Assembly: GCA_047495785.1 (NCBI GenBank)
Contig: JBLDXI010000073.1
Location: forward strand, 310,001-374,000
Source: Lepidodermella squamata
Taxonomy: Eukaryota; Animalia; Gastrotricha
DNA length: 64,000 nucleotides
Reading direction: 5' to 3'
Below, one piece after another: positions 16,218 through 52,057 of the stretch. The notes beneath the pieces were generated by a model. It ran no database searches. It saw only the letters and a list, made by a program, of their open reading frames with translations, and was not told where the DNA came from. Positions within the stretch are counted from its first letter, which is position 1; every line of letters starts with the position of its first letter. Both the position numbers and the translations under genes were made by a program.

Positions 16218-19040
16218 TTTATTTATTTTATTTATTTAAGAGCACAAATCCCAAAGTTGAGAGCTCATAGAAAAGAAAGTTTGCTTGAAGTAAAAATTAG
16301 TAGCAGATTATCTTGTCAATTCGGTCCGTTTCAGCATCAGTATTTCCAACAAAGATTCAACAATTATATTTTTTTCAGATTAGGTTTAGATAAAAAATAT
16401 TTATAAACAAGTTGACGGCAAGAAAAGGCATCGTAACAAATTTTGAAACCACAATCACATCTTGGCGGTAGGTTAGTGTAGTTCATAATGTCGATTGGGC
16501 GATGATGAGGGCAGTGAAAATATAAAGGTAGAGTGTTGAACAGACTAGGACCGGTGAAGCTAAGAGAGGCCTGACCGTAGTCCAGACGCATACGCGGTAT
16601 TTTGAATGAGAGCTGGGAGTAACGAGTGCGAGACGGAGGCTTCAGTACAAAAATAGATTTGATGGACACAGGCGCGTCGCCGACAACACAACGGTACATG
16701 AGAGTAGCAATATGTACATTACGCTTGCCTTGCAGGTCGAGCCATTCTAATTCATCACGAAGAGGAGAGGCGTCAGCGGAATCAGAAGCATTCATAATTA
16801 TTCTCACTGCTTTGTCCTGAAGAGATTGCAATCGTTTCAAAGATGTGTCACAAGCTTCACCAAGTAATACAGGGTGACTTTTTTATAGTGGCAATAATCC
16901 ATGTTAGCAATAATTGCGTCTAGTACTGAATCATCTTTGTATGGCGAGTACTTGCATGTCGATTTCTCCAAACTTAACGAACTCGTGCTAGCAATAAAAT
17001 TTTATGAATGGCCTGGTATTACGCGATAATTATCAGATAGAGTTTGAAGAGTTTGGAGAAATCGACTTTAGTGCAGTGCAAGTACTCGCAATACTAGACA
17101 GTACTAGTCCCGATTAATGCTAACAAAGATTATTTCCACTATAAAAAAGTCACCCTGTACATCGCAATACTGTAAATGAGAAAAAACTAGACCATTAGCC
17201 ATTAATTTCAAGCAATTCCTGTTTAGTCCGTTCTTAGACGCTAGATGAAGAGCAAATAAGCCTTTGCGAGCTTTGGTACAGGCCTTGTCTATTTGCTGAC
17301 TGTATAACAGTTTTTCGTCGAGAATGAAGCCTAGAAGAGTGATAGAGTTGGTTTGATCCAGCGAGTTATCGTTAATACTTATAGAAATTTTTCTGGCGGA
17401 TTTACTAAGCGAGACTATCATGAGCTGCGATTTCTTACCGTTAACCTTAAGACAGTTTGAGCCTAACCAGTTGATAACATTATTAAGGTCGTTTTGAAGT
17501 ACTGATTCCAATTCAGAATCATTTTTGGCAGCAAAATAAATGGTGGTATCGTCAACGTATTGGATTACGGTGGATTTTAGTGATGAAAGTGGCAGCTCGT
17601 TAATATAAATTGTGAAAAGTAAAGGTCCCAATACAGAACCCTGTGGCACTCCATACTTAAGATCAGCTGTGTTCGAAATTTTTCCATTTACTTTGGTCAA
17701 TTGTTGGCGGTTAGAAAGATAGCTAGTTAATAATTCGATAGCCGGCTCGTCGAAACCTGCACTATGTAAAGATGACAGAATACCAGGCGTGGTTAAGGTG
17801 TCAAAGGCTTTACTCATGTCAATGCTAACTATCGCGATTGTCAAACCTTTGTCAAGAGCGCAACGCCAGTCGTTTGTCATTTTAGCTAGGCAAGTTTCGG
17901 TAGAGTGGTGCTTCCTAAATCCGAATTGTGAGGGCGAGAGAAAATCAATCTTTTTCATATAATTCTTAATTTGAAGAGAGAGGCAGCGCTCAAAGGTACG
18001 AAATAAAGGCGATAAGATTGAAATAGGACGATAGTTCCCGACAAGGTCTTTCGAACCTTCTTTGAACAAAGGCGTTACTGTAGCTAATTTCCAGGCGGCT
18101 GGAATCTGGCGTTCCAACAATACTTTATTGTAAATTAAAGCTAAATGCGGCGCTAGGAAATCGGCTGCCACCTTGAGAACACACTCAGGTATTCCATCTG
18201 AACCCGTCGTAGGCTTGCGCGGTGACAATTTGTTCAAACACTCTTTAACGGTTGACGTAGATATGGTTTGAAAATGAAAAAGTGACTTCGTTTGAACCTT
18301 TCTGTCAACGACTTGAGGTGTGTCGATGGATTCGGCTGTTTTGCTACCAATGCTAGCGAAGAAATCATTGAATTCGTTCGCCTTCAGAAGAGATTGATCA
18401 CTATCAAGGTGGGAAAAATTGGAACCTTTGTTTTTCTTGGGTCTGAAGTTTTCGATAACTTTCCACATTTTTCCTGAATCTCTGCCGGCCTCAGCTACTT
18501 GACGGCAATATCGAGCTCTCCTGACTTTACGACGATGGCGTTGATCATATCGAAGCTTTTCTCGAGAGGATAGCAAGAGATCAATATCACGATTGCTCGT
18601 CTCCACGTGGTTGGATTTTTTCGACTTCATTGACTTACGGTCGGGCACTGTTTCGGATATTGCTTCGAGAATAGCAGCATTGAGCTCGTCAAGCTGTTCC
18701 TTTGCGCTTTTCTCTGTTGGAAAAGGATAGTCCAAGCGTTTCCGAAGAGCGTCGATGAACCTGTTGGTGTTCATTTTGCTGAAATCTTTCCCCACGTTCA
18801 TCGAAGTTGGATCGACCTCTGACTTTTCGGTTTTCTCAGTTTCTAAGACCAAAGTGATTCCACGATGGTCGCTGATACCTTCAGTTGCGCCAGTTAGCGC
18901 TATTCTCTTTGAAGAGTAGGAAGTACAGAAGTAATCGAGCATTGTTTTGGATGCGGGCCTGGTTATTATTTTCCGAAATGCTAAATCCAAATTATGGCTT
19001 TGAAGTAAGTCGAGAAAATTGCTTTCATTATCACAATTCA
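16218..19040 (-). mobile_element. 5'-truncated L2/CR1-group non-LTR retrotransposon (end of APE + RT)
   Basis: ITRPASKTMLDYF (APE end), NYRPISIL, QFGFRKHHST, IDMSKAFD, GVPQGSVLGPLLF, YVDD; (TAAA)n tail at ~16218-16238; the ORF is split only by the MITE at 16870-17157. Confidence 0.93.
16870..17157. mobile_element. Tc1/mariner-type MITE inserted in the LINE ORF
   Basis: TIR CAGGGTGACTTTTTTATAGTGG, TA TSD (16868-69, 17158-59); removing it restores YCDV|LLGEACDTSLKRLQSLQDKAVRII. Confidence 0.92.
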
Positions 19041-19979
19041 CAATTCACAACATATATTACAATTGCAGGAAAAAACTATGGCCAAGAAAGCAGCGCGTAT
19101 GAACGTAAACTGCCATACTGTAATGACTCGCAATGACAACCTCGCCCTTGAATAACGAAAAAACTTAATCTCGGTTATATCAAAAATTTACTGAAATTCC
19201 TAATTCGCAGTCCACCTGTAAAAAGCTGTGTTCAGGATTAAGGTGGTGATAACAACCAGCCTTTTTCATTTCAGTTTTCCGCGCTTTCAATTGACAATTT
19301 TCGTTGAATTTTTTGGCGATCGATCTGGGTGATTTTTGCCGATTGCCAATTACGTAATTCTAACGTTCAGCTAGGAGTTAAAGGCGAAATGTTGACATAC
19401 GGGTGAAAAAATCACAGCCTTCGCTTATTTTTTCAAATACTGATTTCACTGGATTTTGAATTTTTTAGAATTTTGTTGCAATCATTCTCACAAAAAATCC
19501 TATTTCAAATGCATCTGAAAATGAGGCTCTTTTATATGCGTCGGTCTGCATTATTAACCACAAATCTGTCAAGTCGACGGTTATTTTGTTTCGCAGCGGC
19601 ATTAGTGCGACTCCCGCGTTCATTTTTAAATCGACCAATGGCGTGCGAGCAAATAATTGTTAGAGAAAACTAGCATTTCACAGTTATTTAGTGACCGGAG
19701 GAAACCACCGCGGATCCGTAAATGTGCACTTGGTCAGGCCTTGCTTAAAAAGAATTTCAAATGTTGCTTTTTCATTTCTCAGGTCTGAATTGAAGCGTGT
19801 TTTAACCGGATGTTTTCAATTTATAATCTTGTTTAAGAATTTTACGCCGAGCCCTGAGTTAGCCAACATTTGAATCATATTCCGCAGTAGACAGGTATTT
19901 CATCAATATTACATTCGTTTTATTCATTATTATATTATATTATATTATATACATAATATACGAAAAATACACTTTGAAT

Positions 19980-20041: not shown

Positions 20042-22702
20042 ATGCGCCACCCATTAGCTTCAATAATCCCCTTCCTCGTGCTGACATTCGGAGCCTGCCG
20101 AAACATATCATGCAACCTGAATTTTGATATTGGAGAAAATGTTGTAATTGCTTGTCAAAATAACGAGACCTGGTCCCAGTCTGGTTTATGTGTCCCCAGG
20201 CAGCGAAGGCCAGTAAGTTTACTACAAAGACATGTACAGCCGGAGTAATTTTTGGGGGGTTCTTCTGTCAGCGGAACCAAATTTACGGTGAGCGAAACCA
20301 AATATGCTGTAGCGGAACTAAATTTTGGAATTTTCTAGTAGCCTGAAATCGCTTTTTGGATATCTCTTGCAGGTCAAGATTGGCCACAATAATTCTAGAA
20401 AACTCACCAATGAATTAAGCGCACCATTCGCTATAAGACGAAGTGTTCAGTTCAAAATTCATCCTTGGCCTAAGTTTCGTAGAAATATTCAAAAAATGAA
20501 TTTTGGCATATTTCGACTTTGGTTCCGCTACAGCAAATTTGGTTCCGCTACAGCAAATTTGATTCCGCTCACCGTAAATTTGGTTCCGCTAAAAGATATT
20601 CCGATTTTTGGGTCCCCTTATCCGTATTGATATAAGGAGCTTGCATTCGTTGCGGATTGCGATATGCTGAGATGACCAAGGCTTTTTTAAAAAAGGAAGA
20701 AACATCCAAAAGGTAACTACTTGCGATGTTTTCAGCCTGTTTCCTGCTCCGGTTTCCCTAATCTCTTAGTTTCCGCTTAGTTTCTTGCGGAATCTCAACT
20801 TTCTGATGGCTGTCTGTTCTTGCATTTTAGGTTCGTGAAGTGTACGAGCAGTTGTGGAATGTAACAGCCCTCACGGACGACTTGGAACAGGTGCGGCAAC
20901 TCGTTGCAGAGATCGACGAATCCACTGGGCGCAAATTTGACCCGAACTGGCGCAACCCTAATGAGGTCAACTGTGCTTCTGAGTATGACAAAATGAAAAA
21001 TGGCACCCTGCTGCACCGTGTCATGTGCAATCGGACGCAATCAGACCAGCGGTTACAAATTGCGCAGATCTTCGTGGATCGTGGAGCTGATGTGAATTCC
21101 AGAGAGGAAAAGTATGGCTTGACTGCGTTGATGTTTGCGGCTCGGATAGGGCACATTGAAGTAGTGCGCCTGCTGCTGGATCGCAACGCTGACATCGAGG
21201 CCAAAGATAAAAATGGCTGGACGGCGTTGATTCACACGGCTTGGAAGGGAGATCCTACAACACTCATACTACTCCGATTGTTGTTGGACCGCAACGCTAC
21301 CATCGACGCCAAGGATAACTTAGGCCAAACAGTACTTATGATTGCAGCTCGGATGGTGCAAGTCGAAGTAGTTCGACTGTTGTTGGATCGCAACGCTGCT
21401 ATTGAGGCCAAGGATAACGATGGCAGGACGGCGTTGATGTGGGCGGCTGCGACTGCGATTGAGAAGATCGAAGTAATTCGATTGCTGCTGGATCGCAACG
21501 CCGACATCGAGGCCAAGGATAAAAATGGCTGGACGGCACTAATGGTTGCGGCTAATAATGGACACATTGATGCAGTTCGAGTGTTGTTGGATCGCAACGC
21601 TAACATCGAGGCCAAGGTTAACGATGGTAAAACGTTGTTGATGATTGCGGCTAGGGATAGGAACATTGCAATCATTCTACTGTTGCTGGATCGCATCGCT
21701 GCTATCGAGGCCCAGGATGACACATCGTTAATGTATGCAGCTAGGTATGGGCAAATCGAATTAGTTGGAGTGTTGCTGGATCGCAACGCTACCATCGACG
21801 CCAAGGATGACAATGGCTGGACAGCCTTGACGTGGTCGGCAAGGTATGGGCAAGTCGAAGTAGTCCGAATGCTGCTGGATCGCAACGCTGACATCGAGGC
21901 CAAGGATAATATTGGCTGGACGGCGTTGATGTATGCGGCAGGTAACGGGCGAATCGACGCAGTTCGAGTGTTGCTGGATCGCAACGCTACCATTGACGCC
22001 AAAGATGACAATGGCTGGACAGCGTTGATGTTCGCGGCTTCTTATGGGCACGTCGATGTAGTTCGACTGTTGCTGGATCGCAACGCTGCCGTCGGGGCCA
22101 AGTATGGCTCTGGCATTACGGCGTTGATGTTCGCGGCTTCTTATGGGCACGTCGATGTAGTTCGACTACTGCTGGATCGTATCACTGCTGTCGAGGCTAC
22201 GGCTAACACTGACGGGACAGCGTTGATGTGGGCGGCCAGATATGGGCAAGTTGAAGTAGTTCGATTGCTGCTGGATCGCAACGCTGCAATCGACGCCAAG
22301 GATGACAATGGCTGGAGAGCCTTGACGTGGTCGGCAAGGTATGGGCAAGTCGAAGTAGTCCGAATGCTGCTGGATCGCAACGCTGCAATCGAGGCTAAAG
22401 ATAATATAGGCTGGACGGCGTTGATTTTTGCGGCTAGGTATGGGCAAGTCGAAGTAGTTCGATTGCTGCTGGATCGCAACGCTGCTATCGAGGCTAAGGA
22501 TAGAGATGGCTGGACGGCGTTGATGTGGGCGGCCTGGCATGGGCACGTCGAAGCAGTGCGACTGTTGCTAGATAGAGGCGCAAATAAGAACGTCAGAAAT
22601 TCAGACGGCGATACAGCTCTCGATATCGCAATTTGCCGAAACGATACTGCTGCGGCCTTGCTGAGGACGCGAGGAGCAACTCGTGCAAAGTCATCCTGTT
22701 GA
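20042..22702 (+). CDS. predicted secreted protein: signal peptide + partial CCP + ~17 ankyrin repeats; exons 20042-20212, 20831-22702 (~680 aa)
   Basis: MRHPLASIIPFLVLTFGA signal; ISCNLNF..IACQNNETWSQSGLC CCP half; phase-0 GTAAGT/TTTTAG intron; uninterrupted ANK ORF ending AKSSC. Confidence 0.85.
20265..20600. mobile_element. MITE with AGCGGAACCAAATTT sub-terminal repeats, intronic
   Basis: Inverted arrays at 20270-20326 and 20518-20592. Confidence 0.7.
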
Positions 22703-25085: not shown

Positions 25086-26904
25086 TTAATTTTGAGTCAA
25101 GGCTTTGTGAATTTCAGACTTTTTCGATACTAGTCCAGATATCAATCTGAAGGCTGAGATGTAGTCATTTCGGCTTGCATCAAAGTCATTTTGAGCTCCA
25201 TTCTGCAACAAAAACGCCACGATTTCTTCCTTGTCGCCGAGAGCCGCCAAATTCAGAGCGCTATACCCACCTTGGCATCGATCGTTGATTTCTACATGGC
25301 CGTTTTTCAGCAGAGAACGAACTGTATCGAGATGGCCGTTGTAAGCTGCGATCATCAGAGGTGTAAACTTGTAGTCATTTGTTAAATCTTCGTTAGGATC
25401 ACTGCCAAGTTGCAGAAGCAGCTCAACGATTTCAGTCTTACCTAGAAAAAAAGGAAAAAATAATTCCAGATAAGTTTCAAGATTTCGAGAACTATGCGAC
25501 AAAACAGCAACTTGGCAGAACAGCAAATGCGACAAAACAGCAAATTGTTTTTCATTTCTCGACGAATCAACGAAAACTTGTAAGAGCACCGTGCAGTGCG
25601 CGAAGTAGCGGGAAGACTGGGAGTACGGTACTCCCAGTTCGAAAGGTCTCGGCAAGAAAACCCGAAAAAAACCACAGGGGGGACCCTTTGGTCTGCAATT
25701 TCGGGCCAGATAATGCCTGAAAGTACCCCCAACTCGAGCATCCTACTTCGCGCACTGGCACCGTGTTTCTGCTGTTATGTCGCAAGTTGGAAAATCTGCT
25801 GTTTTGTCGCGTTTTGCTGTTTTGGGTATTTGCTGATGTGACGGTGGATATTTTTCCAATTTCATGGGATGTTTTCAGAATATTTTAACATTCCTCATTT
25901 TACAGAATTCTATAAAACCTTTTGAAAAATTACATGAAATTCAAAACAGAGTTTTCGCAATTGTTGAACATTTTCGCTGAATTTTTAGTCGCAAGATTTT
26001 TTATTTTTGTCTTACCCTTTGAAGCCGCATGTGTTAGAGCTGTCCAACCATTCGAGTCCTTTGTATTGATAGCCGCATCCTTCTGAACCAAAAGCCGTAA
26101 GGTCTCTGCATCGCCATGCCTCGCCGCCATTATTAAGGCGGTCTTGCGACTATCGTCCAGCCTTGCATTCACATGCGCCCCTTTCTCTATCAAAAGCCCT
26201 GCAATCCTGGATTGATTATACTTAACAGCTGCTAATAACGGCGTCCAGCCACCCTGGCCTTGAAAATTCACGCACGCCCCACATTGATCGATAAGATACT
26301 CAGCGATTTGCAATTTCCCATGACGGGCGGCGAACATCAAAGGCGACCAGCCATTTTTCGAATCTCCAGCATTAAAATCCGCCCCTTTATCGACCAAATC
26401 CGTAGCCGCATTGAAATCACCACGGCAGCAAGCTTCGATCAATTGCGGGGTCAAACTCGCGTCTTTCACATGATTTCTCAATCGATTCGCCTCGATTAGG
26501 ACGATATCTTCAGGATTCCGGCCAAGTAAATCTCGAACCTCGATGATATTGATAGGCTGCGTACAGGCCGGGCATTGAAATTCGTAACGGCCGTCGGCGA
26601 TTTCGAGCTTCAAATAGCTTTTAATGCAAGAACGGCATGCTCGGTGCTTGCAGGCGACGTTCGTCACGAAAAGTGTTTCGAGGGGCTTGTTCAAGGCCCA
26701 GCAGATGCAGCAGTAGCCTGTTTGGGAGGCAGATAACGGCGGCGTGAAGCTTTCGTCGTCGTATTCCGAATCGGATAGATCGCTCGGCCTTCGAAGGCTG
26801 TCGCTCGAAACCGATGAAGAGCAACTTCCGCCTGATCCATGGTAACGCATCGGCTTCTCAGAGCCAGATGACGCTAATTCGTCCTCGTTCTGCCCGGACT
26901 CCAT
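25086..26904 (-). CDS. RING (RBR RING1-like C3HC4) + ankyrin-repeat protein; exons 26904-26016, 25441-25086
   Basis: CCIC..CKHRACRSCIKSYLKLEIADGRYEFQCPAC followed by ~7 ANK; a phase-1 intron joins HAASKG|KTEIVELLL in frame. Confidence 0.85.
25594..25757. mobile_element. hAT-type MITE (164 bp)
   Basis: TIR CAGTGCGCGAAGTAG; 8-bp TSD GCACCGTG; empty site present in the duplicate at ~9799-9806. Confidence 0.92.
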
Positions 26905-30438: not shown

Positions 30439-33400
30439 TCAGCAGGATGACTTTGCTCCAATTGCTCCTCGCGACCTCAGCAAATTGTCCACAGTGCTTC
30501 CGCAATTCGCAAAATCAAGAGCTGTCTCGCCGTCTAAATTTTTGACATCCTTATTCGCACCTCTATCTAACAAAAGTCGAACTACTTCGACGTGCCCAAA
30601 CCGTGCCGCATGCATCAACGCCGTTGTGCCATCGTTATCACTGGCCTCGATGTTAGCGCTGCGATCTAACAAAAGTCGAACTACGTCAACTTGCCCATAC
30701 TTAGCCGCCCACATCAACGCCGTCCAGCCATCGTTATTCTTGGCTCCGATTGCAGCTTTGCGATCCAGCAACATCCGAGATACCTCGACTTGACCATACG
30801 CAGCCCCGTGCATCAACGCCGTCCAGCCATTGGCATCCTTGGCGTCGATGGCAGAGTTGCGATCCAGCAACAGTCGAACTGCTTCGAGTTGCCCACTCTT
30901 AGCCGCCCACATCAACGCTGTCATGCCATAAAGAGCCTTTACGTCGATGGAAGCGTTGCGATCCAGCAACAGTCGAGCCACTTCGACTTGCCCATATGCA
31001 GCCGCATGCATTAACGCAGTCATGCCATCGTTATCCTTGGCGTCGATGCTAGCGTTGCGATCCAGCAACAGTCGAACTACGTCGATGTACCCATACGCAG
31101 CCGAATACATCAATGCCGTCCTGCTATTGCCATCTTCTCTGTAATTCACATCAGCTCCTCGTTCAATGAACAACTTTGCAATTTGCAGTCGCTGGTCTGA
31201 TTGCGTCCGAATGCAAGTGACGCTGTGCAGTAGGGTTCCATTTTTCATATGATAGTTCGTACAGGATAATTGCTTTGAGTTGCGCCAGTTCGGGTCGAAT
31301 TTGCCGCCGGTTGATTCGTCAATCTCCGCAACGAGTTGCCGCACCTGCGCCAGATCGTCCGTGTTAGCTGTTACATTCCACAACTGCTCGTACACTACAC
31401 GGACCTAAATGCAAGAACAGACAGACAGCTCAGATTCAGCTACATATACAGTAGAAGCTCTATAATCCGGACACCATCGGTCGCGGAAAAGCGTGTTCAG
31501 AGAGCGAAGTACCGTTAGGAATGGTAGGGATCATCCCTAACAGTCACGTTGGTCCGTACAGTGAGCTCATTCTCAGAGGGGGGACCCTTCTGTCAATTGT
31601 TCAAGTCCCTAGTCCCTACCAATTTCGCTCAGCCTAACCAACCAGCCCATCTCACCAGGCCCCTGAACCGCCCATCATCGTGAGATCCCAACTAAGCCAT
31701 TCTCGAAAATGTTCCCAAATTTTGAGCAGTGGCAACTAGAATTTCGTTAGAAATTTCAGTAACCACTCGGCCCGTCTTAAAACTGCAATTTCATTCAAAA
31801 TCGCAATTTCCCATTGTAGTTCCGTTTCAGCCCGCCGAAGGTTTTGGTTTTGTTTCTTGTTTCAACTACGTTTCGATTTTGTGGGGAATGATCTTTCAAG
31901 AAAATTTACAGGTCTTCGCTGCCTCGAGACGCAAAGACCAGGTTGAGACCAGGTTGCGTTCGAGAGGCACGTTATCGCAGTGTTGCCTTGAATCTGAAAT
32001 TTCAGATTGCACGATATGCTTCGGTTTGCTCCGAAGATTGACAGACCAGAAGATATGTTACCGTTTTGAATCGTGGGAACGGGACCGCAGCCTTAACAAC
32101 ACGTATTACAGAAAATAAGAGGCGTATAGGAGATGCTTTGAATCCTTACCTACCATTAATTACCGAAGGGGAGCACCTTCCATTTATTACCGGTCGAAAT
32201 GGAGGTAGACAAGTGGCAAAATTGACAGGGTTGGAATATGTATAACCAGGGTTGCATTTAACGCTAACAGCCCCTCCTCTTTCCACTGCAGTTCCAGGCT
32301 TTAAAACTTCGCCAGTATCTTCCGAAGTTTCTGGATCCACACGAGTCACAAATCCCGCAGATACGTTAGGCACTGGGCAAGACTGCTCTAGCGTACTTCT
32401 ACTGTCAGAGACTACTAGTGTCTGGCTGCGAACATCAGTGTTCTCCGAAATCCAATCGAGAACTTTGCAGACTCTGCTGTAGATACCAGGAGTGTATCCC
32501 TTGCATGACGCGTCGCCATTAGATATTATGCCGAGAATGTAAGTCTTCCCGGATTGCAAGCACATGAGAGGGCCTCCGGAATCCCCGTAGCAGACGTCGC
32601 TATCATAGGCGGCTAAACACATCTTCGAGTCAGTGATAGTGACCGGATCTGAGCGACCGCGGGAATACTCCAGCGAGCAATTTCGGTAGGATCGAACTTG
32701 AAGATCCAGCTTTCTCGGGATATCAGATAGTCTGGCTAAAATAGGAGGAAGCGATAAGGAAGGTAGAGGGCTGTGACTATGTTAAATTTCGGAACATACT
32801 GTATGCAAAGTGACCCCAGCCAGCCGCCACCGCTGAATCACATCCGTCGATCGAATTGGCGGTGATAGGGTTGGCTCGGCACATTGTAGCCGCGTCGGGT
32901 AGACAAATCGGTTTGATCTGCTGTGAGAATCTGGAAACTGGGGTCGTCAGTCGCAAGAGAGCGAAATCAAAGTCGTAGAAGTTCTGACTCCCGTTGTACA
33001 GCGGATGGACCAAAGCAGGCAGCGACACTACAGACTCGTAAGAGCCCGCCTCAGACCTCAAACTGATATTATGGCGACCTAGCATCGCTTTGATACTGTA
33101 AAAAGGACAAATATACATGCAATTTAGTCAGGTAAATTTGCAGTTCTACGTACAAAATGGGGGTCTCTCCGGTATTCCAAACGCAATGAGCAGCTGTGAT
33201 GAGCCATTGCTTCGAGATGAGGGAAGCTCCGCAGTAAGAAGCTGACGATTCGCCGCTTTTGTATATCTCAAGGAAGACCTAAGCGACAAACATCCTGTTT
33301 TCGTTGAATTACATTAACATGGAAGTGAAACAGACCAGCCACGGGTATTCGTTGGGTCCTGCTGGCTGGCTGCCTGGGCCCCGTGATTTCGCTGTAGGGT

Positions 33401-33491
33401 TCACAACACCGCATTCGAAATTATCCTGCGCAACGACTACTCCGCATACCAGTACAAAGAAGGCGATTACTGAAGCTGTTTCGTGATGCAT
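30439..33491 (-). CDS. secreted S1 serine protease - CCP - CCP - ankyrin-repeat fusion; exons 33491-33336, 33278-33154, 33095-32800, 32735-32154, 32091-31910, 31404-30439 (~768 aa)
   Basis: Signal peptide; TAAHC, DFALL, DVCYGDSGGP; CCP1 CPVP..KCNPGY..TC..RC; CCP2 CGPVPTIQNG..ISC..TC..WSQPGLC; ~8 ANK; all five GT-AG introns are phase-compatible with no stops. Confidence 0.88.
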
Positions 33492-34156
33492 TTTGAACAT
33501 TTTTCAAGAAAAGCATCTACTAACAAAGGCTTCATAGAACCTTCTTCGTATGTGCGTAAACGTGCAGCTTTCGTATACCTACGTATAACGTTTTTGTGTA
33601 TATTTCTCTGTTTGTCATAGTGATGAGATACATCTAACGCAAAATTCAAAGCCCGTGTTGGTAATACTCAGCGAAGAAAAATCTGAGGCTAGGTTTGAAA
33701 CATCCGGTTAAAATACCAGAACTTGAAAACCTGAAGGTAAGAAAATATGACAATTGTCGACACAGCTTCCTTTGTCTGTTTTTATTTATGCACTTAGACT
33801 TAGAAAATTCACACCATCAAACACGTCTGCAGTGAAACCCCGATTCCCCATCCTCTTCGGTGTCATGAAAGTCGAAAGCACCTACCAGCTCGAAAACTGT
33901 CAAATCATACTAATGCTAGACTTTTACCCTTGAACCTAAAAGCAAATTACGATCTGTAGGATCAACACAGCCGAACTTCATTCATTATTACGTTAGGCTC
34001 TTAAAAGTACGCCTGAATGGGTCATCAAAGTGGTTTTTTGGCGCTTCGCTAAGGCTCATCACAGGAGTTTAAGGAGTTTAAGGTTTCAGGTGGAGCGATA
34101 AAGGCTCACGCAGCAGGTATTATCTATCGCAGTTGGGTTAAATCACGAATCATGAA

Positions 34157-35259: not shown

Positions 35260-36435
35260 TCAACAGGATGACTTTGCTCGTCTTGCTCCTCGCGCCCTCA
35301 GCAAGTCGGCCGCGGCGGTTTTATTCCAGCAAATTGCGATATCGAGAGCTGTCTTGCCGTCTGAATCTCTAGCATCCTTATTTGCACTTCTATCCAGCAA
35401 CAGTCGAACTGCTTCGACTTCCCCATACTTAGCTGCAATCATCAGCGCTGTCTCGTCATTTTTATTCTTGGCCTCGATGGCAGCTTTGCGATCCAGTAAC
35501 ATTTGAATTGCTTCCAAATGCCCAAGCCTTGCTGCCCACATCAACGCCGTCTCGCCATTGTTATCCTTGGCCTCGATGTCAGCCCTGCGATCCAGCAACA
35601 GTCGAACTACGTCAACTTGCCCATTCCGAGCCGCATAAATCAACGCCGTCACGCCACTGTTATCCTTGGCCTCGATGGTGGCATTGCGATCCAGCAACAG
35701 GCGAACTGCTTCTTGCCCGTACACAGCTGAATACATCAACGCCGTCCAGCCATTGTCATCTTTGACGTCAATGGTAGCGTTGTGATCCAGTAACATTCGA
35801 ACAGATTCGACGCGCCCTCCCTTAGCCACAATCATCAACGTCGTCAAGCCACCGTTTACCTTGGCCTCGACGTCAGCATTGCGATCCAGCAACAGTCGAA
35901 CTACTTCTTCTGCTCCATACAGAGCTGCATATAGCAACGCCGTCATTCCATAATGAGTTTTGGCCTCGATGAAAGCTTTGCGATCCAGCAGCAGTCGAAC
36001 TAATTCGACGTGCCCAGAAACAGCCGCAAACATCAACGCCGTTGTGCCATCGTTATCCTTGGCCTCGATTGCAGCGTTGCGATCCAGCAACATGCGAGCC
36101 AATTCATTCTGCCTATTCCCTGCCGCATACGTCAATGCGGTTAAGCCATTGTAATCTTCCCTGTAATTCACATCAGCTCCACGGTCCATGTACAGCTGAG
36201 CAATTTGCACTCGCTGGTCTGATTGTGTCTGATTGCACATAACACGGTACAGCAGGGTGCCATTTTTCATTTTCTCATACGCAAGCACAGCACAGTTGAC
36301 CTTATTAGGGTTGCGCCAATTCGGGTCGAATTTGCCGCCAGTGGATTCGTCGATCTCTGCAACGAGTTGCCGCACCTGCGCCACGTCGTCCGTCAAGGCT
36401 GAAACATTCCACAGCTGGTCGTACACTTCAAGAAC
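35260..36435 (-). CDS. intact orphan ankyrin exon (~10 repeats) of the protease-ANK family
   Basis: Phase-0 acceptor CACTTAG|GTT CTT GAA GTG (VLEVYDQLWN), open to AKSSC*; I found no upstream exon of its own in 36440-38420. Confidence 0.7.
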   Translation of the reverse strand, partial: VLEVYDQLWNVSALTDDVAQVRQLVAEIDESTGGKFDPNWRNPNKVNCAVLAYEKMKNGTLLYRVMCNQTQSDQRVQIAQLYMDRGADVNYREDYNGLTALTYAAGNRQNELARMLLDRNAAIEAKDNDGTTALMFAAVSGHVELVRLLLDRKAFIEAKTHYGMTALLYAALYGAEEVVRLLLDRNADVEAKVNGGLTTLMIVAKGGRVESVRMLLDHNATIDVKDDNGWTALMYSAVYGQEAVRLLLDRNATIEAKDNSGVTALIYAARNGQVDVVRLLLDRRADIEAKDNNGETALMWAARLGHLEAIQMLLDRKAAIEAKNKNDETALMIAAKYGEVEAVRLLLDRSANKDARDSDGKTALDIAICWNKTAAADLLRARGARRAKSSC

Positions 36436-38424: not shown

Positions 38425-41400
38425 TCAACAGGATGACTTTGCTCGACTTGCTCCTCGCGACCTCAGCAAATCGGCCGTGGCTGTATAATTTTTACAAATC
38501 GCCATATCGAGAGCTGCGCTGCCGGCTGAATTTTTGACATCCTTATTTGCACCTCTATCCAGCAACAGGCGAACTACTTCGACTTTTCCATTCGCAGACG
38601 CAATCATCAACGCCGTTGAGCCTTCAATATCCTTGGCCTCGATATTAGCGTTGCGATCCAGCAACAGTCGAACTACTTCGGCCTGCCCTAACTCAGCCGC
38701 AAGCATCAACGCCGTATAGCCATTTTTGTCCCTGGCGTCGATAGCAGCGTTGCGCTCCAGTAACAGTCGGGCGACTTCCACTTGCCCAGTCCCAGCCGCA
38801 TACATCAACGCCGTCCAGCCATTTTTGTCCTTGGCGTCGATAGCAGCGTTGCGCTCCAGTAACAGTCGGGCGACTTCCACTTGCCCACTCTCAGCCGCAC
38901 ACATCAACGCCGTCCTGCCATTGTCATCCGTGGAATTCACATCAGCGCCACGATTTACGAGCAGCTGAGCAATTTGGAATACCTGATCTGATTGCAACTG
39001 TTTGCACGTAACACTGTGAAGCAGGGTGCCATTCGCAGTAATAATTTCTTTTGTTGCGCCAGTTCGGGTCATACCTGCCGCCAGTGGATTCGTCGATCTC
39101 CGCAACGAGTTGCCGCACCTGCGGAACGTCGGCCGTAGAGGCTGTTGCATTCCACAACTGCTCGTACACTTCAGTGAGCTAAACGCAAGAACAGGCATAC
39201 ATCAGCCAGTTGAGATTCATGCAACTCGTGCAACTCATGCACTTTGTTGATCTTCCAAGAAAACATACAGGTCTTTGCTGCCTCGAGACGCAAAGACCAG
39301 GCTGAGACCAGGTTGCGTTAGAGAGGCACGTAATGAAAGCATTTCCTCGAATCTCAAAATTCAGGCTGCATGATATGCTTTGGTTGGATCCGACGCTTGC
39401 TGGACCAGGGGATACATATATCCGTTTAGAATTGTGGGTGGAGATCCACAACCTATATGCGAAGATTATCTTAGAAGAACGAGCTTATATGAACTGTTAC
39501 CTACTTGACGGGTTGCACCTTCCATTAATCACCGGTCGAAATGGAGGTAGGCAAGTGGCAAAATTGACAGAGGTGGAATATGTATAACCAGGGTTGCATT
39601 TAACGCTAACAGCCGCCCCTTTTTCCACTGGAGTTCCAGGCCCTAGAACTTCGCCAGTATCTTCTGAAGTTTCCGGATCCACGCGGGACACAAATCCCCT
39701 GGATTAGTAGGGTACTGGGCAAGACTGCGCCGGGGTACTTGTCTGGCTGCGAACATCTGTGTTGTCTGATATCCAATCTAGAACCTTACAGACTCTGCTG
39801 TAGATGCCTGGAGTGTATCCTTTACATGACTCATCCCCATTGGATATTATGCCGAGAAGGTAAGTCTTCCTCGATTGCGAACACATGAGAGGGCCCCCAG
39901 AATCACCGAAGCAGACGTCGCTGTCATCGGCGGCTAAACACATCTTCGAGTCAGTGATAGTGACCGGATCTGAGCGGCCGCGGGAATACTCCAACGAGCA
40001 ATTTTGGTAGGATCGAACTTGAAGATCCAGCTTTCTCGGGATCTCAGATAGTCTCGCTAAAACACGAGAAAGAGATACAATATGTTTTCGATTTTCAAGA
40101 TCAATGATCAAAGTCCGCTTGGTCACATGGGATGAACAGCTAGTTCTGGGGTTGTGCTTTTTCCGTTGTTTCGTTGTTTCGTATATTTTCGTCATCTCAC
40201 AAAAAAATTGAAGAAAGAGAACAATGTAGCAAAGGAGGATTCGTACCCGGGATCTTAAGGATTCGAACCATGGGTTGGGGGTACTATACAATGGGAGCCT
40301 TCCGATTCTAAACTGATTCAAAACTGAAAACGCTTTTATTTGTCTTTTTTTTGTTTCGTATATAAAATTGCCTGAAGATTATGACCACCACGACTTGCCA
40401 CTATTGTGCAGTGGTCCAGAGTCCAGAGTTCGAAAACTCTTTTTGCTTTATTTCTTCTGTTTCGTCGTTCGTTTTTTCTTATTGCTATTTCATTTTTTAA
40501 CGTTCACTTTTTAAACTCGAATGTTTTTGCATTTGCAGTAATCTAAGGCTTTAAGAGGTCTCTTGTATCAGACTAAAAAAATATTGAACGAGATTGGGTT
40601 CGAACCTCGGCCGCCTTCCATCACTCAGTGATTTTCACTTTTAAGCAACAGAAGGCAACTGTTTTTTTGTTTTCACTATTTAGTTCATATTTTTTCTTTG
40701 ATGTGAGACTTTTTCTATCAAGTAAAAATTCGGGGAGGGGGTTTGGTGATGTTAAAGTACGAAACATACTGTATGCAAAGTGACCCCAACCAATCGCCAC
40801 CGCTGAATCGCATCCATCGATCGAATTCGCGGTGGTGGCGTTGGTTCGGCACATTGTAGCCGCGTCGGGTAAACAAATCGGTTTATCTGCTGCGAGAATC
40901 TTGGAACTGGGGTCGTCAATCGCAGCAGTGCGAAATCAAAGTCGTAGTAGTTCTGACTCCCGTTGTACAGCGGATGGACCAAAGCAGGCAGCGACACTAC
41001 AGACTCGTAAGAGCCCGCCTCAGACCTCAAACTGATATTATGGCGACCCAGCATCGCTTTTATCCTAAATAACAGGCCGAAAATAACATGGGAAATAGGG
41101 AAAGGACCCACAAAATAGGGGTTTCCCCGTTATTCCAAACGCAATGAGCAGCAGTGATCAGCCATTGCTTCGAGATGAGGGAAGCTCCGCAGTAAGACGC
41201 CGACGATTCGCCGATTCTGTATATCTCAATGAGGACCTGCGACAAACATCCTGTTTCTGTACAATTACATCGAAATGAAACAGACCAGCCATGGGTAATC
41301 GTGCGGTCCTGCTGGTTGACTGCCAGGACCTTTTATTTTGGTTGCTGTAGGGTTCTCAGCGCCGCATTCGAAATTATCTTGACTACTAACGACTACTCCG

Positions 41401-41447
41401 GATGCTAGCGAAAGGAAGACGATTGTTGAAGCTATTGCGTGGCGCAT
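38425..41447 (-). pseudogene. paralogue of the protease-CCP-CCP-ANK gene with inactivating lesions (~6 ANK)
   Basis: Same six exons (ATG 41447, ANK acceptor at 39179); 1-bp deletion at ~40884, in-frame TAA at 39706-39704, frameshift at ~39040. Confidence 0.85.
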
Positions 41448-42119: not shown

Positions 42120-44777
42120 TTAATTTCGCTCGGGTACTGATAAACGCAAACCGCCCTCCTCGGGCTGTGGGGCATCTGCAGCGTTGCATTGAACTGCTGG
42201 CTCGACGATTTCCGGAGCAGGACCAACCAAGACCGGAGGAGCTACAGCAATCGAATCTTTCGTCGTTTGATACGGAGTTACGATAGTTCTTTGCTGCAGC
42301 GAATCTCCAGCATTATTGACCGATGCATTTTTCGGGATAACATTCGCCCCTCCATTCGCCTTGAGAGCATTCCAAAAAACCGCGAGGCTAATCAAGCCAG
42401 AGTAGATTATCGAAACAAAAGCTAGGGCTATCGCCTGAGAATTCCCAGCCGACATTCCGCCAGATTCGAGTAAGAACTCAATCGCAACCGAGCACGCAAA
42501 CATTGTGAGCGAAAGCGGGACTGCGACCATGTACGGCTTGATCACGTCCAAATTCGCCATAACTCGCTGCCGCATATAATTACGAGTCGAAATCGTCAAA
42601 TAAACAGACCAAGACACAATCGCGATATTCAACCCGATTTGTGTCGCTAGGAAGTTCAGCATATTCTCAGACTGGCATGAAACCCTTCGAATTTTCGAGA
42701 AGGTATCCGTATCCAAGTTGTAAGTCGCTACAGTTCTCTCCGGATCTTCAACCACCTCGCCCAATCCGTCGTATGCCAGCCAAACTATCGTAACAATCAA
42801 ACTCATCGTTACCAAAATCGCCGTGATAGTCAGAACATAAGGATCACTCAGTTCGATGAGAACTCGCTTCGGCGCGAAACTAACGACAGACATCATAGAC
42901 ATTGATGACATTGTAGAACGAGGGCGGCGTCTTCGGCTTTTCTTCGAAGCGTTCGACTTACTAGCAGCAGATTTCTTACTAGCAGCCAACGCGTCTCGAT
43001 ATCGATTCCTCGCCCTGTATCTCAACTCATTCAAAGCATGTTTCGCCGACATGATCGAACTCATGATAGTGCTGTTAAGTAGGGTTAGCCCCGTTGATAG
43101 GAAGAAAACCTGAAGTTGGCAATACGACGAGCCGCCCTGTTGGACTAGGAAAATCGCGCCAAGGTCGATCATTAGGAATCCGAGGAACAAAACGAAAGGA
43201 ACCGGCAATAGCTGGCCTGAATCTCGCCTCATAATCAGGAAGGACCGAAAAGCTAGGCATAACTGCACGACTATCAGCCAAATCGAACTAACAATCACTG
43301 CGGATGAGATTGCCTGAGGTGTAACTCCTAGGGTGACTTCAAGGGTCGCTGTATCTTTCGGAAGTTTCCAGGGGATCTCAGCTACCTCTTCAAGAAGGAA
43401 CGAGCTAACGTTGTAACAAGTTGTAGTCTCGGATCGGCAGGTAATTTGGTGCGATACGACTAGTTTTTTCCTCTCAGCCGACCAATACGTAACGAATTGA
43501 GGCTCGTAGTCATACTCAAGCCGCGATGAGTATTTGAACCTACCGAATCGAAGGTTGTTGAAATCAACATTCGCCGCACTTCGATTCGCGGCTAGCATAA
43601 CCTCTCTAGGGTTCGTTTTGAAGTCTCTCAGCGACATATTTCGCTTCTGGAGTGACGTCTCAGTATCATTAAGGATGATTAAAGCCGTAAGTAGGCGGTC
43701 GTAGCACAAATGACGGAAATCGTAATCAGCAGTCACCGTTCCGTTAGTGAAATTCGTGAATAAGACCTCGAAATCTCGAACAGTATGGCCTAGGGCTGAT
43801 CGGCCAGACATTGGCTTCAAAATATCGAGCGGACTCCCGATGAACAGTGAAATTTTAAATTGCTCGATGATTATGCTTCGATTACACCCCGGGTAGATCT
43901 CAAACGGCACCGTGTAGATATCGACGTAGGCGAAAAATTGGAAAATGAACATGTATCTATTGCCGGTCATGCCGAATTTGTACGCCTGGCATAGGAAACG
44001 AAGCCCGGCCGAAGTTTCGGAGGATTCCATGGTGAAGATACGGATGTCGCGTGACTTGAGACTACTCATCACGTCATCGTTGAAGTCGAGACTGCCCTCG
44101 TAGGCTAGGACTTTGAACCCGTTTTCCACGGCCATTTTGTTGAAGAGGGTTGCTACGTCGAAATTGAACGAATTCGCGTTGTTGAATGTGATGCCTAACG
44201 ACCGGATGTTCGTCGCCATTTTCAGCCACGTCAGTCGAGCGTATAGGATTATTTCAACCCCAGCCCTAATTCGGTACATATTAGGGTTGAGGCCTCGTTT
44301 CGCTGTTTGAACTGGAGCCGTGCAAGAGCCGCCAATCGTCAATCGGTTGAAGTATTGGACAGTCGATCCCCAGGACTTGCAGCCAGCATTAAGCATCGGC
44401 CCCATGCTGACCGGGGCTGGGATGAGGTCTTCCTCCTGAGAAGCTTCGATTCGCCTGACGTAGTCGATCGCAACAGCCATTGTGTAGAACGAGTTGACGG
44501 CTTCGTTTTGGAAATCTAGGACGATGTGGTAGTCGGGTAGGATGTCCAGGCGTTGGTTGACGATTTCAGTCACCATTTCTTGCGAGGCTCGGCACAGCAT
44601 GTTGTCACGCGGGCTGTAGCCAGTGAACAGCATCATTGAAAGTAGAGAGAGCCGATAAGGCTTGATCCGGGTCGAATTCACGGATTGGGATTCCGAAACT
44701 TGAAAATTTAACAGGAAGATTAGACACCCTGCTGTTACTGCTAGGGTGAAGGTACGGATTTTACTTTCGTATTTCAT
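42120..44777 (-). CDS. intronless class C GPCR, GABA-B-receptor-like (~885 aa)
   Basis: Signal peptide, Venus-flytrap domain (VNQRLDILPDY), no Cys-rich domain, 7 TM, ECL2 CQSEN. Confidence 0.82.
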   Translation of the reverse strand: MKYESKIRTFTLAVTAGCLIFLLNFQVSESQSVNSTRIKPYRLSLLSMMLFTGYSPRDNMLCRASQEMVTEIVNQRLDILPDYHIVLDFQNEAVNSFYTMAVAIDYVRRIEASQEEDLIPAPVSMGPMLNAGCKSWGSTVQYFNRLTIGGSCTAPVQTAKRGLNPNMYRIRAGVEIILYARLTWLKMATNIRSLGITFNNANSFNFDVATLFNKMAVENGFKVLAYEGSLDFNDDVMSSLKSRDIRIFTMESSETSAGLRFLCQAYKFGMTGNRYMFIFQFFAYVDIYTVPFEIYPGCNRSIIIEQFKISLFIGSPLDILKPMSGRSALGHTVRDFEVLFTNFTNGTVTADYDFRHLCYDRLLTALIILNDTETSLQKRNMSLRDFKTNPREVMLAANRSAANVDFNNLRFGRFKYSSRLEYDYEPQFVTYWSAERKKLVVSHQITCRSETTTCYNVSSFLLEEVAEIPWKLPKDTATLEVTLGVTPQAISSAVIVSSIWLIVVQLCLAFRSFLIMRRDSGQLLPVPFVLFLGFLMIDLGAIFLVQQGGSSYCQLQVFFLSTGLTLLNSTIMSSIMSAKHALNELRYRARNRYRDALAASKKSAASKSNASKKSRRRRPRSTMSSMSMMSVVSFAPKRVLIELSDPYVLTITAILVTMSLIVTIVWLAYDGLGEVVEDPERTVATYNLDTDTFSKIRRVSCQSENMLNFLATQIGLNIAIVSWSVYLTISTRNYMRQRVMANLDVIKPYMVAVPLSLTMFACSVAIEFLLESGGMSAGNSQAIALAFVSIIYSGLISLAVFWNALKANGGANVIPKNASVNNAGDSLQQRTIVTPYQTTKDSIAVAPPVLVGPAPEIVEPAVQCNAADAPQPEEGGLRLSVPERN

Positions 44778-45530
44778 TTTGAAAAGTAAGTTTGACCTTT
44801 GAAAGGTTGGAAAATTGAGTAGAGCGAAATATATGCACCGACGTATATGTCTTGAATATTGCACTCTCAAATGTAACGCGTTTTGTCTTTGAGAATCAGA
44901 TTTAATCAGCTAATGCTCGTTACGAGGTCTGAACAGAATTCAAAGCCGTCTTAACGATAAGTAGGAAATCAATTGAACTAATTTAATCACAGAAAAAGCA
45001 GCTGCAGTGACGATTATAGAAAAAGTTGCCTAATTGGAAAGATTGTCTCTCGCATTTGCCCTGCGGTTGTGAGCTTCTAAAGAGAATAAGTCTCCCCGAT
45101 CAAAGTCCACAAGGCAGTGTCATAGTAATGCCATCCCATTAGGAGATTGAAAGTTCATGCCTCTCAGACATTTACCACTGACAAATGATACGGGATTGAA
45201 TGTGTTCCTTTTACTTCTGTTCTAAGGAAGGACAGACTCCTCCTCAGCTAGAATTTTAGTCCGCGAAGTTCAAAAGGATAAAATAACCTCAGGTGGAGCC
45301 CAAATACCCAACAAACTACAGGGGAACTTTATGGTCCTTTTACGTACCCGAAAGTACCCCCAAGCGATCCTACTTCAGAAACATTTGCTTTTTGTACTTT
45401 GAATTTAAGATAATGTACAGATTGTTACGCTATGAAGGAAACAACAATTGAAGATTGCAAGACTTCAACTTTATTTGAACCGAACTTTCAAGGTACTCAT
45501 TATACTGAATCCGTTTAGTTTATTCGAGAT

Positions 45531-50019: not shown

Positions 50020-52057
50020 TCAATTAAGCTTCGTTCTCTCTCGAGGGTGCACGGTCTCATCATTCCGTTCTCCGGCTGAGATGAGAATGTCAATGGTTTT
50101 CAGCTTGTTTTCAACCGACACGAAATCCTCGCAATTCTGAGCGAGGAGTAGAGCTGTCCAGCCTGTCGACGGCGCTCTGTAATTGGCATCAGCTCCCGCC
50201 TCCCGTGTTAGAACATCTACAACGTTGTGGTGGCCTTTCACTGCTGCACACATGAGTGGTGTCATCCATTTTTCAGGCGATTTTTGACCGAGTATCCTCG
50301 ACAACCGGGATGAGACCTCATTGTTGATGCACAGAGCATTTACATCGGCATTGAATTCCACGGCTAGATTTCTCACGATTTCCGCGTGTTCACTCCGAGA
50401 AGCATAATGCAAAGGAGTCTCGCCATCTTCGTCAGATGCATTAACGTCAGCTTTGAATTCTCCGACAAGAATTCTCACGATTTCCGCGTGTCCCTTCTCA
50501 GCAGCGTAATGCAAAGGTGTCCTGCCAATTTCATCAGAGGCATTAACGTCAGCTTTGAATTCTCCGGCAAGAATTCTCACGATTTCCGCGTGTCCATTTC
50601 CAGCAGCGTAATGCAGGGGAGTTTCGCCAAATTTTTTAGAGGCATTAACGTCAGCTGTGAATTCTCCGGCAAGAATTCTCACGAATTCGGCGTGTCCATT
50701 CTCAGCAGCGTTATGCAAGGGAGTATCGCCATCTTCAGCAGAGGCATTAAAGTCAGCTTTGAATTCTGCGGCAAGAATTCTCACGATTTCCGCGTGTCCG
50801 TTTCGAGCAGCGATGTGCAAGGGAGTCCAGCCATATCGATTAGAGGCATTAACATCAGCCTTGTATACTTCGGGAAGAATTTTCACGATATCCTCGTGTC
50901 CATTTCGAGCAGCGATGTGCAAGGGAGTCTCGCCTTCATGATTAATGTCTCCAACATTGTCTTCTTTGGCAATAATTTTTAAGATCTCAGCGTGTCCTTC
51001 TCGGGCTGCGATGTGTAGCGATGTTGTTCCATCTCTCGATCTTGCGTTTGCTCTAGCTTTGAGTTCCACCACAAGTAAAACAACCAAGTCTATGTGGCCT
51101 CTAAGCACGGCCAAATGTAAGGGTGTATAGCCCGAATTCATAGTCGTGTTCACATCTTTTGTGAATTCAGTTGCTAGAACTCTTGCAAGTTCCACATGGC
51201 CTTCCATTGCAGCAGCATGTAACAAAGTCATGCCTTGCTCATTCGTTATTTGAGTGTTCGCTCCCATTTCTTTCGCTAACAATTTAACAGTCGTAGAGTG
51301 GCCGTTCTCAGCTGCAGCCCATATCGGTGTCTTACCATCTGCAGCTGCCGTCTCAACACTTCTCTGTGGCAACTTTCCAAGAATTCTGGCTATCTTTGCT
51401 CGACCATTATCAGAGGCAACGTACATCGGCGTTCTTCCCAATTTGTCCGTAGATAATGGATCGGCGTTGAATTTTGTCACCAGAAGATCGACTATATCAT
51501 CACGGCCCTCTTGTGCAGCCAGAAACAATGGGGTAACACCTTCATCATTCTTGCAGTTGACATCTAACTTCAAAGTTGATAACAACGATTCAATTTCTCC
51601 CGTTTTGTGGTGTCTGATGAGACGAAAGAGACGCTGGAACGACATGGAAGAGTATAACTACAATTTTTGTATCGAGTTCGCATACCATCTGCGGTGAATT
51701 TGGATCAAACAACTGTGCTGGATTGATCTCCTGAGAGGTGTTTATGACTTGCTGGGAATTCGGATCATTCAGCGAGTTTAGAAGAACCAGCGGCTCGATG
51801 CGGCTTGATCTATCTTTAACTAAACACGCCAATATAATGTTTCGGAATGCAGGCGAATAACCGCGTGTATTGTCAAACATTGGAGAATTTCTGCTAATAC
51901 ACCGTAGAGATTATCCACTATAAATTCTGGGCTGAAACTTACGTCAAGATTTCCAGGACACTTTTGAACTGAAAAGAACCCACGGGGTGACATGACGTGA
52001 AAAGTTTGAAAATAAAACTAACAGGCAAGTAAAAATTCGCTAGCTCGAACATCGTCA
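50020..52057 (-). CDS. kinase-ANK unit C, 5'-truncated: part of exon 4, exons 51968-51943, 51893-51686, intact ANK exon 51633-50020
   Basis: Near-identical to unit A from 59128 down to the deletion point (offset 7071); lacks kinase exons 1-3. Confidence 0.7.

Follow-up and report, generated by a model that had tools for sequence, protein, structure and literature searches.

Gene A and its predicted product

Can an animal gene place ankyrin repeats, the textbook intracellular protein-binding module of animals, on a protein that is made for export? The question is raised by a locus of the gastrotrich Lepidodermella squamata, which we analyzed within a stretch of 64,000 nucleotides (nt) of contig JBLDXI010000073.1 (positions 310,001–374,000, forward strand; GenBank assembly GCA_047495785.1). 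This whole stretch is referred to below as the window, and all coordinates are those of the window. The gene in question, gene A, lies on the minus strand at 33491–30439. It is a real and intact gene model, with the order signal peptide, S1 serine protease, two complement-type (sushi) CCP modules and ankyrin domain. We consider it probable, judging from the sequence, that gene A is a single intact gene and belongs to a young family, specific to its lineage and duplicating in tandem, in which a head carrying the signal peptide is cis-spliced in phase 0 onto the ankyrin exon and the product is exported. Three related loci in the window, namely pseudogene B, the ankyrin cassette C and the protease-less gene D, enter the argument throughout and are described in their own section.

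Assembly of the six exons of gene A yielded a coding sequence of 2307 nt, corresponding to 768 amino acids (aa), with no internal stops. All introns are GT-AG, with phases 0, 2, 1, 1 and 0. These results bear out a preliminary description of this DNA, which had claimed that six exons join in frame with exactly these phases. Introns 1–4 are 57–64 nt long and intron 5 (31405–31909, phase 0) measures 505 nt. Exon 1 (33336–33491) encodes the signal peptide, a propeptide and the activation residue Arg37, followed by exon 2 (33154–33278) with the N-terminal part of the protease and its catalytic His (Pfam Trypsin, E 2.1e-7), exon 3 (32800–33095) with the middle part and the catalytic Asp (Pfam Trypsin and alignment to matriptase) and exon 4 (32154–32735) with the C-terminal half of the protease (Pfam Trypsin, E 7.9e-16), a linker of ~20 residues and the first CCP module, CCP1. 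The second module, CCP2 (Cys388–Cys440; Pfam Sushi, 35.6 bits), is encoded by exon 5 (31910–32091) together with the linker VSRQRRP, and the ankyrin domain (Pfam Ank_2, E 1.5e-103) by exon 6 (30439–31404), which ends in the stop codon at 30441–30439. Paralogues B and D have starts homologous to the start codon at 33491; a second in-frame ATG is found at 33500. The preliminary description had also claimed the order signal peptide–S1 protease–CCP–CCP–ankyrin without a transmembrane segment, and this order was recovered here, with CCP1 falling below the Pfam threshold and being CCP-like by its structural model.

Proposed splicing of CCP2 onto the ankyrin exon

In A, C and D, the frame of the ankyrin exon starts exactly at a conserved acceptor, the AG of which completes an in-frame TAG. 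The ankyrin exon of gene A contains no in-frame ATG for 52 codons, its first internal methionine being Met53. Over the first 42 codons of this exon, the ratio of non-synonymous to synonymous substitution rates (dN/dS) was 0.09 between A and D (dS 0.56), 0.19 between A and C (dS 0.47) and 0.25 between C and D (dS 0.30), and over the first 54–56 codons it ranged from 0.22 to 0.42 among the three. The low dN/dS indicates that the codons upstream of the first methionine are translated. Reading frames and codon substitutions together show an ankyrin exon that cannot initiate translation alone and the first codons of which are under purifying selection.

The other side of the junction was analyzed in the same loci. 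Exon 5 of gene A ends in a phase-0 donor (CCT|GTAAAT), and gene D has the donor RQRRP|GTAAGT, with the RQRRP|V phase-0 junction and the acceptor being the same as in gene A. In pseudogene B, the intron between CCP2 and the ankyrin exon is just 90 nt long, too short to accommodate a promoter or first exon of its own for the ankyrin part. Neither AATAAA nor ATTAAA occurs in intron 5 of gene A, which is also free of repeats and contains nothing resembling a hidden exon for a signal peptide. Read-through of the exon 5 donor into this intron reaches a stop after 15 codons. Taken together, the frame at the acceptor, the dN/dS values, the gene D junction and the content of intron 5 make cis-splicing of CCP2 to the ankyrin exon the best reading, and on these features the CCP2-to-ankyrin join in gene A appears well supported.

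The same features bear on an alternative with two transcription units, in which a secreted protease–CCP–CCP protein would end shortly after exon 5 and a cytosolic ankyrin protein would be made from a spliced-leader acceptor at 31404, starting at Met53 or at a leader-derived AUG. In favour of such an arrangement are the length of intron 5, eight times that of the others, the acceptor of cassette C with no visible head, and the stop that is met 15 codons beyond the exon 5 donor on read-through. We regard it as distinctly unlikely, given the strong purifying selection on the 52 codons before the first methionine, the lack of a poly(A) signal in intron 5, the homologous intron of 90 nt in B and the way in which cysteines and sequons are distributed in the ankyrin cassettes (see below), which fits a secretory-pathway protein. 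As a mere signal peptide with a 35-residue stub, gene D would, moreover, be senseless, and yet the gene is intact and its donor and junction are conserved.

Predicted export of the gene A protein

If exons 1–6 are joined as proposed, the ankyrin domain would follow the head into the secretory pathway. The predicted signal peptide comprises residues 1–21, with an n-region of 7 residues and an h-region of 14, then V-V-A|Q, and cleavage is predicted after VVA (33431–33429). A hydrophobicity scan (Kyte–Doolittle, 19-residue windows, threshold 1.6) found the only windows above 1.6 in the 768-aa product at the N-terminal residues 1–30. Because this sole hydrophobic segment is N-terminal and the C-terminus, KSSC, is hydrophilic, the protein has neither a membrane span nor a tail of the glycosylphosphatidylinositol (GPI) type. 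Gene A thus has the features of a classical secretory protein: an N-terminal signal, no other span and no retention or GPI signal. The mature protein contains 24 cysteines, with an even number in each domain. Secretion of the gene A product is therefore a prediction that we consider well supported, by a route in which the protein would enter the endoplasmic reticulum (ER) and then be exported.

The ankyrin cassettes of A (321 aa), C (391 aa) and D (623 aa) have exactly four cysteines each, all in the caps, arranged as an N-cap pair 16–19 residues apart and a C-cap pair that includes the last residue. In exon 6 of gene A, the N-cap pair is encoded at 31263–31261 and 31215–31213 and the C-cap pair at 30504–30502 and 30444–30442. 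The internal repeats of all three cassettes are devoid of cysteines, across up to 17 repeats. A, C and D also have two sequons in common, NVT/NVS and NGT, despite letter changes, and the broken frames of pseudogene B read NAT and NGT at the sequon positions common to the other three. The cap cysteines and sequons fit a fold of the secretory pathway, with cap disulfides being plausible, and we propose that the ankyrin domain may be adapted to the secretory route by two cap disulfides and N-glycans.

Protease and CCP modules

Exons 2, 3 and 4 scored 31.4, 32.1 and 59 bits, respectively, against Pfam Trypsin (PF00089; cut-off 20.6 bits). The catalytic triad is present, with His83 (His57; TAAHC, 33188–33186) aligned with the TAAHC of protease relatives, and Asp137 (Asp102; DFALL, 32968–32966) and Ser245 (Ser195; GDSGGP, 32580–32578) aligned with the catalytic residues of matriptase and chymotrypsin. 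Asp239 (32598–32596) takes chymotrypsin position 189 in the alignment, and the S1 pocket keeps Gly216 ('SNGD') and Gly226 ('PGIYSRV'), with Asn in place of Trp215. With Asp189, Gly216 and Gly226, the pocket of the gene A protease is, as aligned, of the trypsin type. Twelve cysteines of the protease occupy the usual S1 positions, including the propeptide Cys27 (ECG), as in chymotrypsinogen.

The activation site is different. Arg37 (33383–33381) is followed by GPGS (33380–33369), where relatives read R|IVGG at the aligned site, so that gene A keeps the cleavable Arg37 and the propeptide Cys and lacks Ile16–Val17. Paralogue B reads K|GPGS. The Ile16–Val17 residues normally drive the switch from zymogen to enzyme, and normal zymogen activation of the gene A protease is doubtful because GPGS replaces IVGG. 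The protease is probably zymogen-like or cofactor-dependent rather than a constitutively active trypsin, though its triad is intact.

Of the two CCP modules, CCP2 has four cysteines and the conserved Trp, and its Pfam score lies above the Sushi (PF00084) gathering score of 20.7 bits. CCP1 (Cys312–Cys380; 32379–32173) reached only a sub-threshold score (15.8 bits, E 0.019) and is missing the conserved Trp; its four cysteines are at CCP spacing. A single-sequence AlphaFold (AF2) model of CCP1 (79 residues) had a predicted local distance difference test (pLDDT) score of 83, and a Foldseek search of the PDB with this model returned top matches that were nearly all CCP modules (TM-score ~0.6, E 0.01–0.3), among them those of beta-2-glycoprotein I, CR2, factor H, C4BP, CD55, C2 and factor B. 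BLASTP gave no significant match between CCP1 and CCP2.

Paralogues of gene A in the window

The window holds an ankyrin gene cluster, which includes the four 'TALM' cassettes A, B, C and D (named after a motif in their repeats) and several 'TPLH' ankyrin genes at 50–59 kb. Paralogue B (38425–41447, minus strand) has the same exon order as gene A, with 75–92% nucleotide identity. The preliminary description had reported that the exon chain recurs at this place, and its order and orientation indeed do, but the copy is not intact: three frameshifts and a premature stop make B a pseudogene. Exon 3 has lost 1 nt (about 40884), CCP1 is interrupted by an in-frame stop (39706–39704), exon 5 has gained 2 nt (about 39416) and the ankyrin N-cap is short of a net 17 nt (39052–39035). 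Intron 3 of B (40062–40764, minus strand) is about 700 nt long compared with 64 nt in gene A, and an insertion is likely.

With four disabling lesions in a sister copy 5 kb off, and with a non-canonical activation site in its own protease, gene A might itself be intact through recency only, as a silent or decaying member of the cluster that, like B, has no functional product. We find this highly improbable. Gene A has 768 open codons across six exons, with every splice site canonical, it keeps its catalytic and disulfide residues, and its ankyrin framework has a dN/dS of 0.2–0.4 relative to C and D at a dS of about 0.4–0.6.

Gene D (20042–22702, plus strand) is a derivative without the protease; it is intact and encodes 680 aa. 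In its first exon (20042–20212), a signal peptide is followed by the C-terminal half of CCP2 and by RQRRP, whereas the second exon (20831–22702) encodes about 17 ankyrin repeats. The 5′ flank of the gene is homologous to that of gene A. As judged from these homologies, gene D is a fusion of the signal peptide to half of CCP2 by internal deletion. Because D is intact and B is dead, gene D rather than pseudogene B is the better support from a paralogue for the fusion of an exported head to ankyrin repeats. The intron of gene D contains an element resembling a miniature inverted-repeat transposable element (MITE) at 20264–20596, with 62-nt inverted arms that are 90% complementary, lie 209 nt apart and are built of 20-nt tandem sub-repeats; the length of this intron is probably due to the MITE-like insertion.

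Cassette C (35260–36435, minus strand) is an intact ankyrin exon of 391 codons that belongs to the same subfamily and shares its acceptor and caps. In the 2 kb upstream of it, up to pseudogene B, no exon for a signal peptide, protease or CCP module was recognisable. Cassette C may have been orphaned by duplication, or its head may be an alternative one or lie far away. A signal-peptide-like open reading frame (ORF) just past the stop of B (38420) was considered as the first exon of cassette C and rejected because a GT donor in phase 0 is missing.

The ankyrin array as a putative binding face

Exon 6 of gene A encodes an N-cap, about seven 33-residue 'TALM'-type ankyrin repeats and a C-cap ending in KSSC. 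Its assignment as an ankyrin domain (PF12796/PF00023) agrees with the exact 33-residue spacing and with helix pairs in the AF2 model. The repeat consensus reads ...G-W-T-A-L-M-W-A-A-R-Y-G...L-L-L-D-R-N-A, and repeat entropy is highest at positions 2, 3, 5, 10, 13, 14, 16 and 29, among which are the positions randomised in designed ankyrin repeat proteins (DARPins). In the last three internal repeats, dN/dS was 0.21–0.42 for the framework compared with 0.69–2.7 at the entropy-peak surface positions, a test that is partly circular, its positions having been picked from the same repeats, and that assumes positional orthology where repeat orthology between paralogues is uncertain; for both reasons, the fast evolution of the surface is only suggestive. 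The concave surface of the ankyrin array may be a variable binding face, and the birth-and-death history of the cluster, together with the fast-evolving surface positions, would fit a recognition or effector role towards other organisms.

A bacterial origin of the 'TALM' cassette was considered and set aside, the motif being equally common in fungal and Giardia proteins among the matches. Because it also occurs in fungal and protist cytosolic ankyrin proteins, the motif is uninformative on origin.

The RQRR linker and the possible fate of the protein after its predicted export

Only seven residues, VSRQRRP, link the last cysteine of CCP2 to the first cap helix. The RQRR within this linker (residues 443–446; 31924–31913) is the only RX[KR]R motif of the gene A protein and lies exactly on the CCP2/ankyrin junction. 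It is kept in gene D (PRQRRP), and pseudogene B has RQQR. Since RQRR is on the junction and is kept in D, the ankyrin tail may be severed from the head once the protein has been exported: a furin-type convertase may cut the linker and free the ankyrin module as a separate secreted binder. In gene D, if cut at RQRR, the CCP remnant would be only a pro-piece, and the protein would be a simple pre-pro-ankyrin. The picture of a protease aimed by its ankyrin tail, which the preliminary description had favoured, is weakened both by the GPGS activation site and by the position of RQRR at the CCP2/ankyrin junction. Gene A may function as a targeted protease, a released binder or an effector.

An effector would require no change to the gene model. 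The protein would be secreted in the manner of a venom or effector, and the ankyrin module, freed at RQRR, would act inside the cells of another organism (prey, host or symbiont), working like the ankyrin effectors of bacteria and viruses, with the protease–CCP head serving as carrier, processing aid or separate weapon. Consistent with this are the sole dibasic convertase-type motif at the junction, conserved even in the protease-less gene D, the birth-and-death evolution of the cluster (one pseudogene and repeat numbers from 7 to 17) and the fast-evolving surface positions; ankyrin repeats acting away from the producing cell are, in addition, known in latrotoxins and bacterial toxins (PMC3482391). 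However, no translocation or pore-forming domain was found, Pfam searches of exon 6 giving Ank families only, and the cap cysteine pairs and sequons suggest a fold kept in an oxidising, extracellular setting. On balance, we regard an action inside foreign cells as unlikely.

Our preferred reading remains that of an exported protein made from a cis-spliced transcript. Besides the two reservations about the surface positions given above, several points weigh against this reading or parts of it. Spliced-leader trans-splicing is possible in principle, so that an acceptor need not mean cis-splicing, and, of the paralogues, cassette C is headless and B dead. The ankyrin exon has four sequons in 321 aa, which is not clearly above chance, and in the AlphaFold model of this exon the N-cap had a pLDDT of only 28–52, leaving the cap disulfides without structural support. 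A proline at P1′ (RQRR|P) is a poor context for cleavage by both furin-type and trypsin-type proteases.

Comparison with known proteins

We searched for relatives of gene A from both of its ends. HMMER searches with exon 4 against 1.84 billion representatives, followed by a local phmmer check for ankyrin, retrieved only distant S1 proteases, and none of the 150 best representatives contained ankyrin. The closest protease domains were TMPRSS9/polyserase-like (~100–117 bits, 33–40% identity) and came from an annelid, mites, insects, shrimp and amphioxus. For the whole ankyrin exon of gene D, the best 120 relatives were generic ankyrin proteins of fungi, bacteria and protists, with PF00089 or PF00084 in none of the 120. 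The gene D ankyrin N-cap (region 1–100) gave only five weak, generic ankyrin matches among 5.8 billion proteins, none of them from the animal's own genome, and an alignment scan of JGI metagenomes with the N-cap gave 599 pattern matches, of which none was confirmed. Three single-exon ORFs of the window, looked up by exact sequence, had no match on record.

An animal-wide survey of trypsin partner domains lists Sushi, ShK, MAM, SRCR and others and never mentions ankyrin (PMC6767649). Literature searches for secreted or extracellular ankyrin repeats under those phrases returned microbial effectors only. No Trypsin-Sushi-Ank protein was found in the database and literature searches, in agreement with the earlier statement that no family with a protease–CCP–ankyrin architecture has been described; within the databases and literature searched, the architecture is undescribed.

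By its predicted domains, gene A belongs to the S1A, CCP and ANK families. In complement-type mosaic proteases (C1r/C1s/MASP, factor B/C2 and horseshoe-crab factor C), the CCPs are N-terminal to the protease and stand next to CUB/EGF, vWA or lectin modules, and none of these proteins has ankyrin repeats. As predicted for gene A, factor B and C2 do without classical Ile16 N-terminal activation. Gene A is like these proteases in combining an S1 protease with CCP modules in a secreted protein (secretion being predicted for gene A) and unlike them in its order, protease–CCP–CCP–ankyrin, and in having no Pfam match to their other modules. Because neither the domain order nor the accessory modules (CUB, EGF) agree, gene A falls outside the MASP/C1r/factor C architecture. 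With the TMPRSS9/polyserase-like S1A proteases it shares the ECG...R layout of the activation peptide, whereas these relatives have R|IVGG and often several protease domains or a membrane anchor.

The alpha-latrotoxin family of widow-spider venom provides a case in which, as proposed here for gene A, animal ankyrin repeats act outside the producing cell (PMC3482391). Latrotoxins have no conventional signal peptide and are released by disintegration of the gland cells (PMC3482391). Unlike gene A, they have their own N- and C-terminal domains around the ankyrin repeats and no protease or CCP; gene A, for its part, has a classical signal peptide and only Ank families in exon 6, and thus falls outside this family.

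Functional analogues of the putative binding module are DARPins and the variable lymphocyte receptors (VLRs) of lampreys, which are repeat-protein binders with variability on one surface, and the entropy peaks found here fall on positions randomised in DARPins. However, DARPins are engineered and VLRs use leucine-rich repeats (LRRs) and somatic assembly, whereas the diversity seen here is germline and spread across paralogues, with binding still putative. Bacterial ankyrin proteins with signal peptides (for example, the metagenomic P0001 and P0002) also have an export signal followed by 'TAL'-type repeats; unlike gene A, they are prokaryotic single-ORF proteins without protease or CCP.

Other genes in the window

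The ordinary 'TPLH' ankyrin genes at 50020–51645 and 56591–58716 (minus strand) have no signal peptides, unlike the 'TALM' subfamily. Two of these 'TPLH' genes are identical at the N-terminus (MSFQRLFRLIRHHKTG...), suggesting that they duplicated recently. In a single-exon ORF at 25930–26904 (minus strand), ankyrin repeats are joined to a weak RING finger (zf-C3HC4, E 3e-4); an exact look-up gave no record of this ORF. Adjoining gene D, a 645-codon reverse-transcriptase ORF (17104–19041, minus strand; RVT_1, E 2.5e-34) is of the long interspersed nuclear element (LINE) type. A 916-codon frame at 42120–44870 (minus strand) has weak Pfam matches to ANF_receptor and 7tm_3, resembling a class-C G-protein-coupled receptor; none of its word-sharing candidates from a database of 5.8 billion proteins scored at E<=1e-10.

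Implications

Gene A and its paralogues raise the tentative possibility that the ankyrin repeat serves here as an extracellular recognition scaffold, in the form of germline-diversified, secreted, disulfide-capped and glycosylated arrays that are carried by protease, CCP or minimal heads and possibly released by a convertase. If this is true, gene A would represent a new class of mosaic serine proteases, and its ankyrin fold would have been adaptable by nature to extracellular work via the ER, cap disulfides and glycan sites. Such arrays would amount to DARPins evolved in nature and to a third repeat-protein solution for recognising non-self or other targets, next to immunoglobulins and the LRR-based VLRs, and protein engineers would gain natural examples of an ankyrin scaffold stabilised for secretion. 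For the organism itself, it would mean that an invertebrate may hold a previously unseen recognition or effector repertoire.

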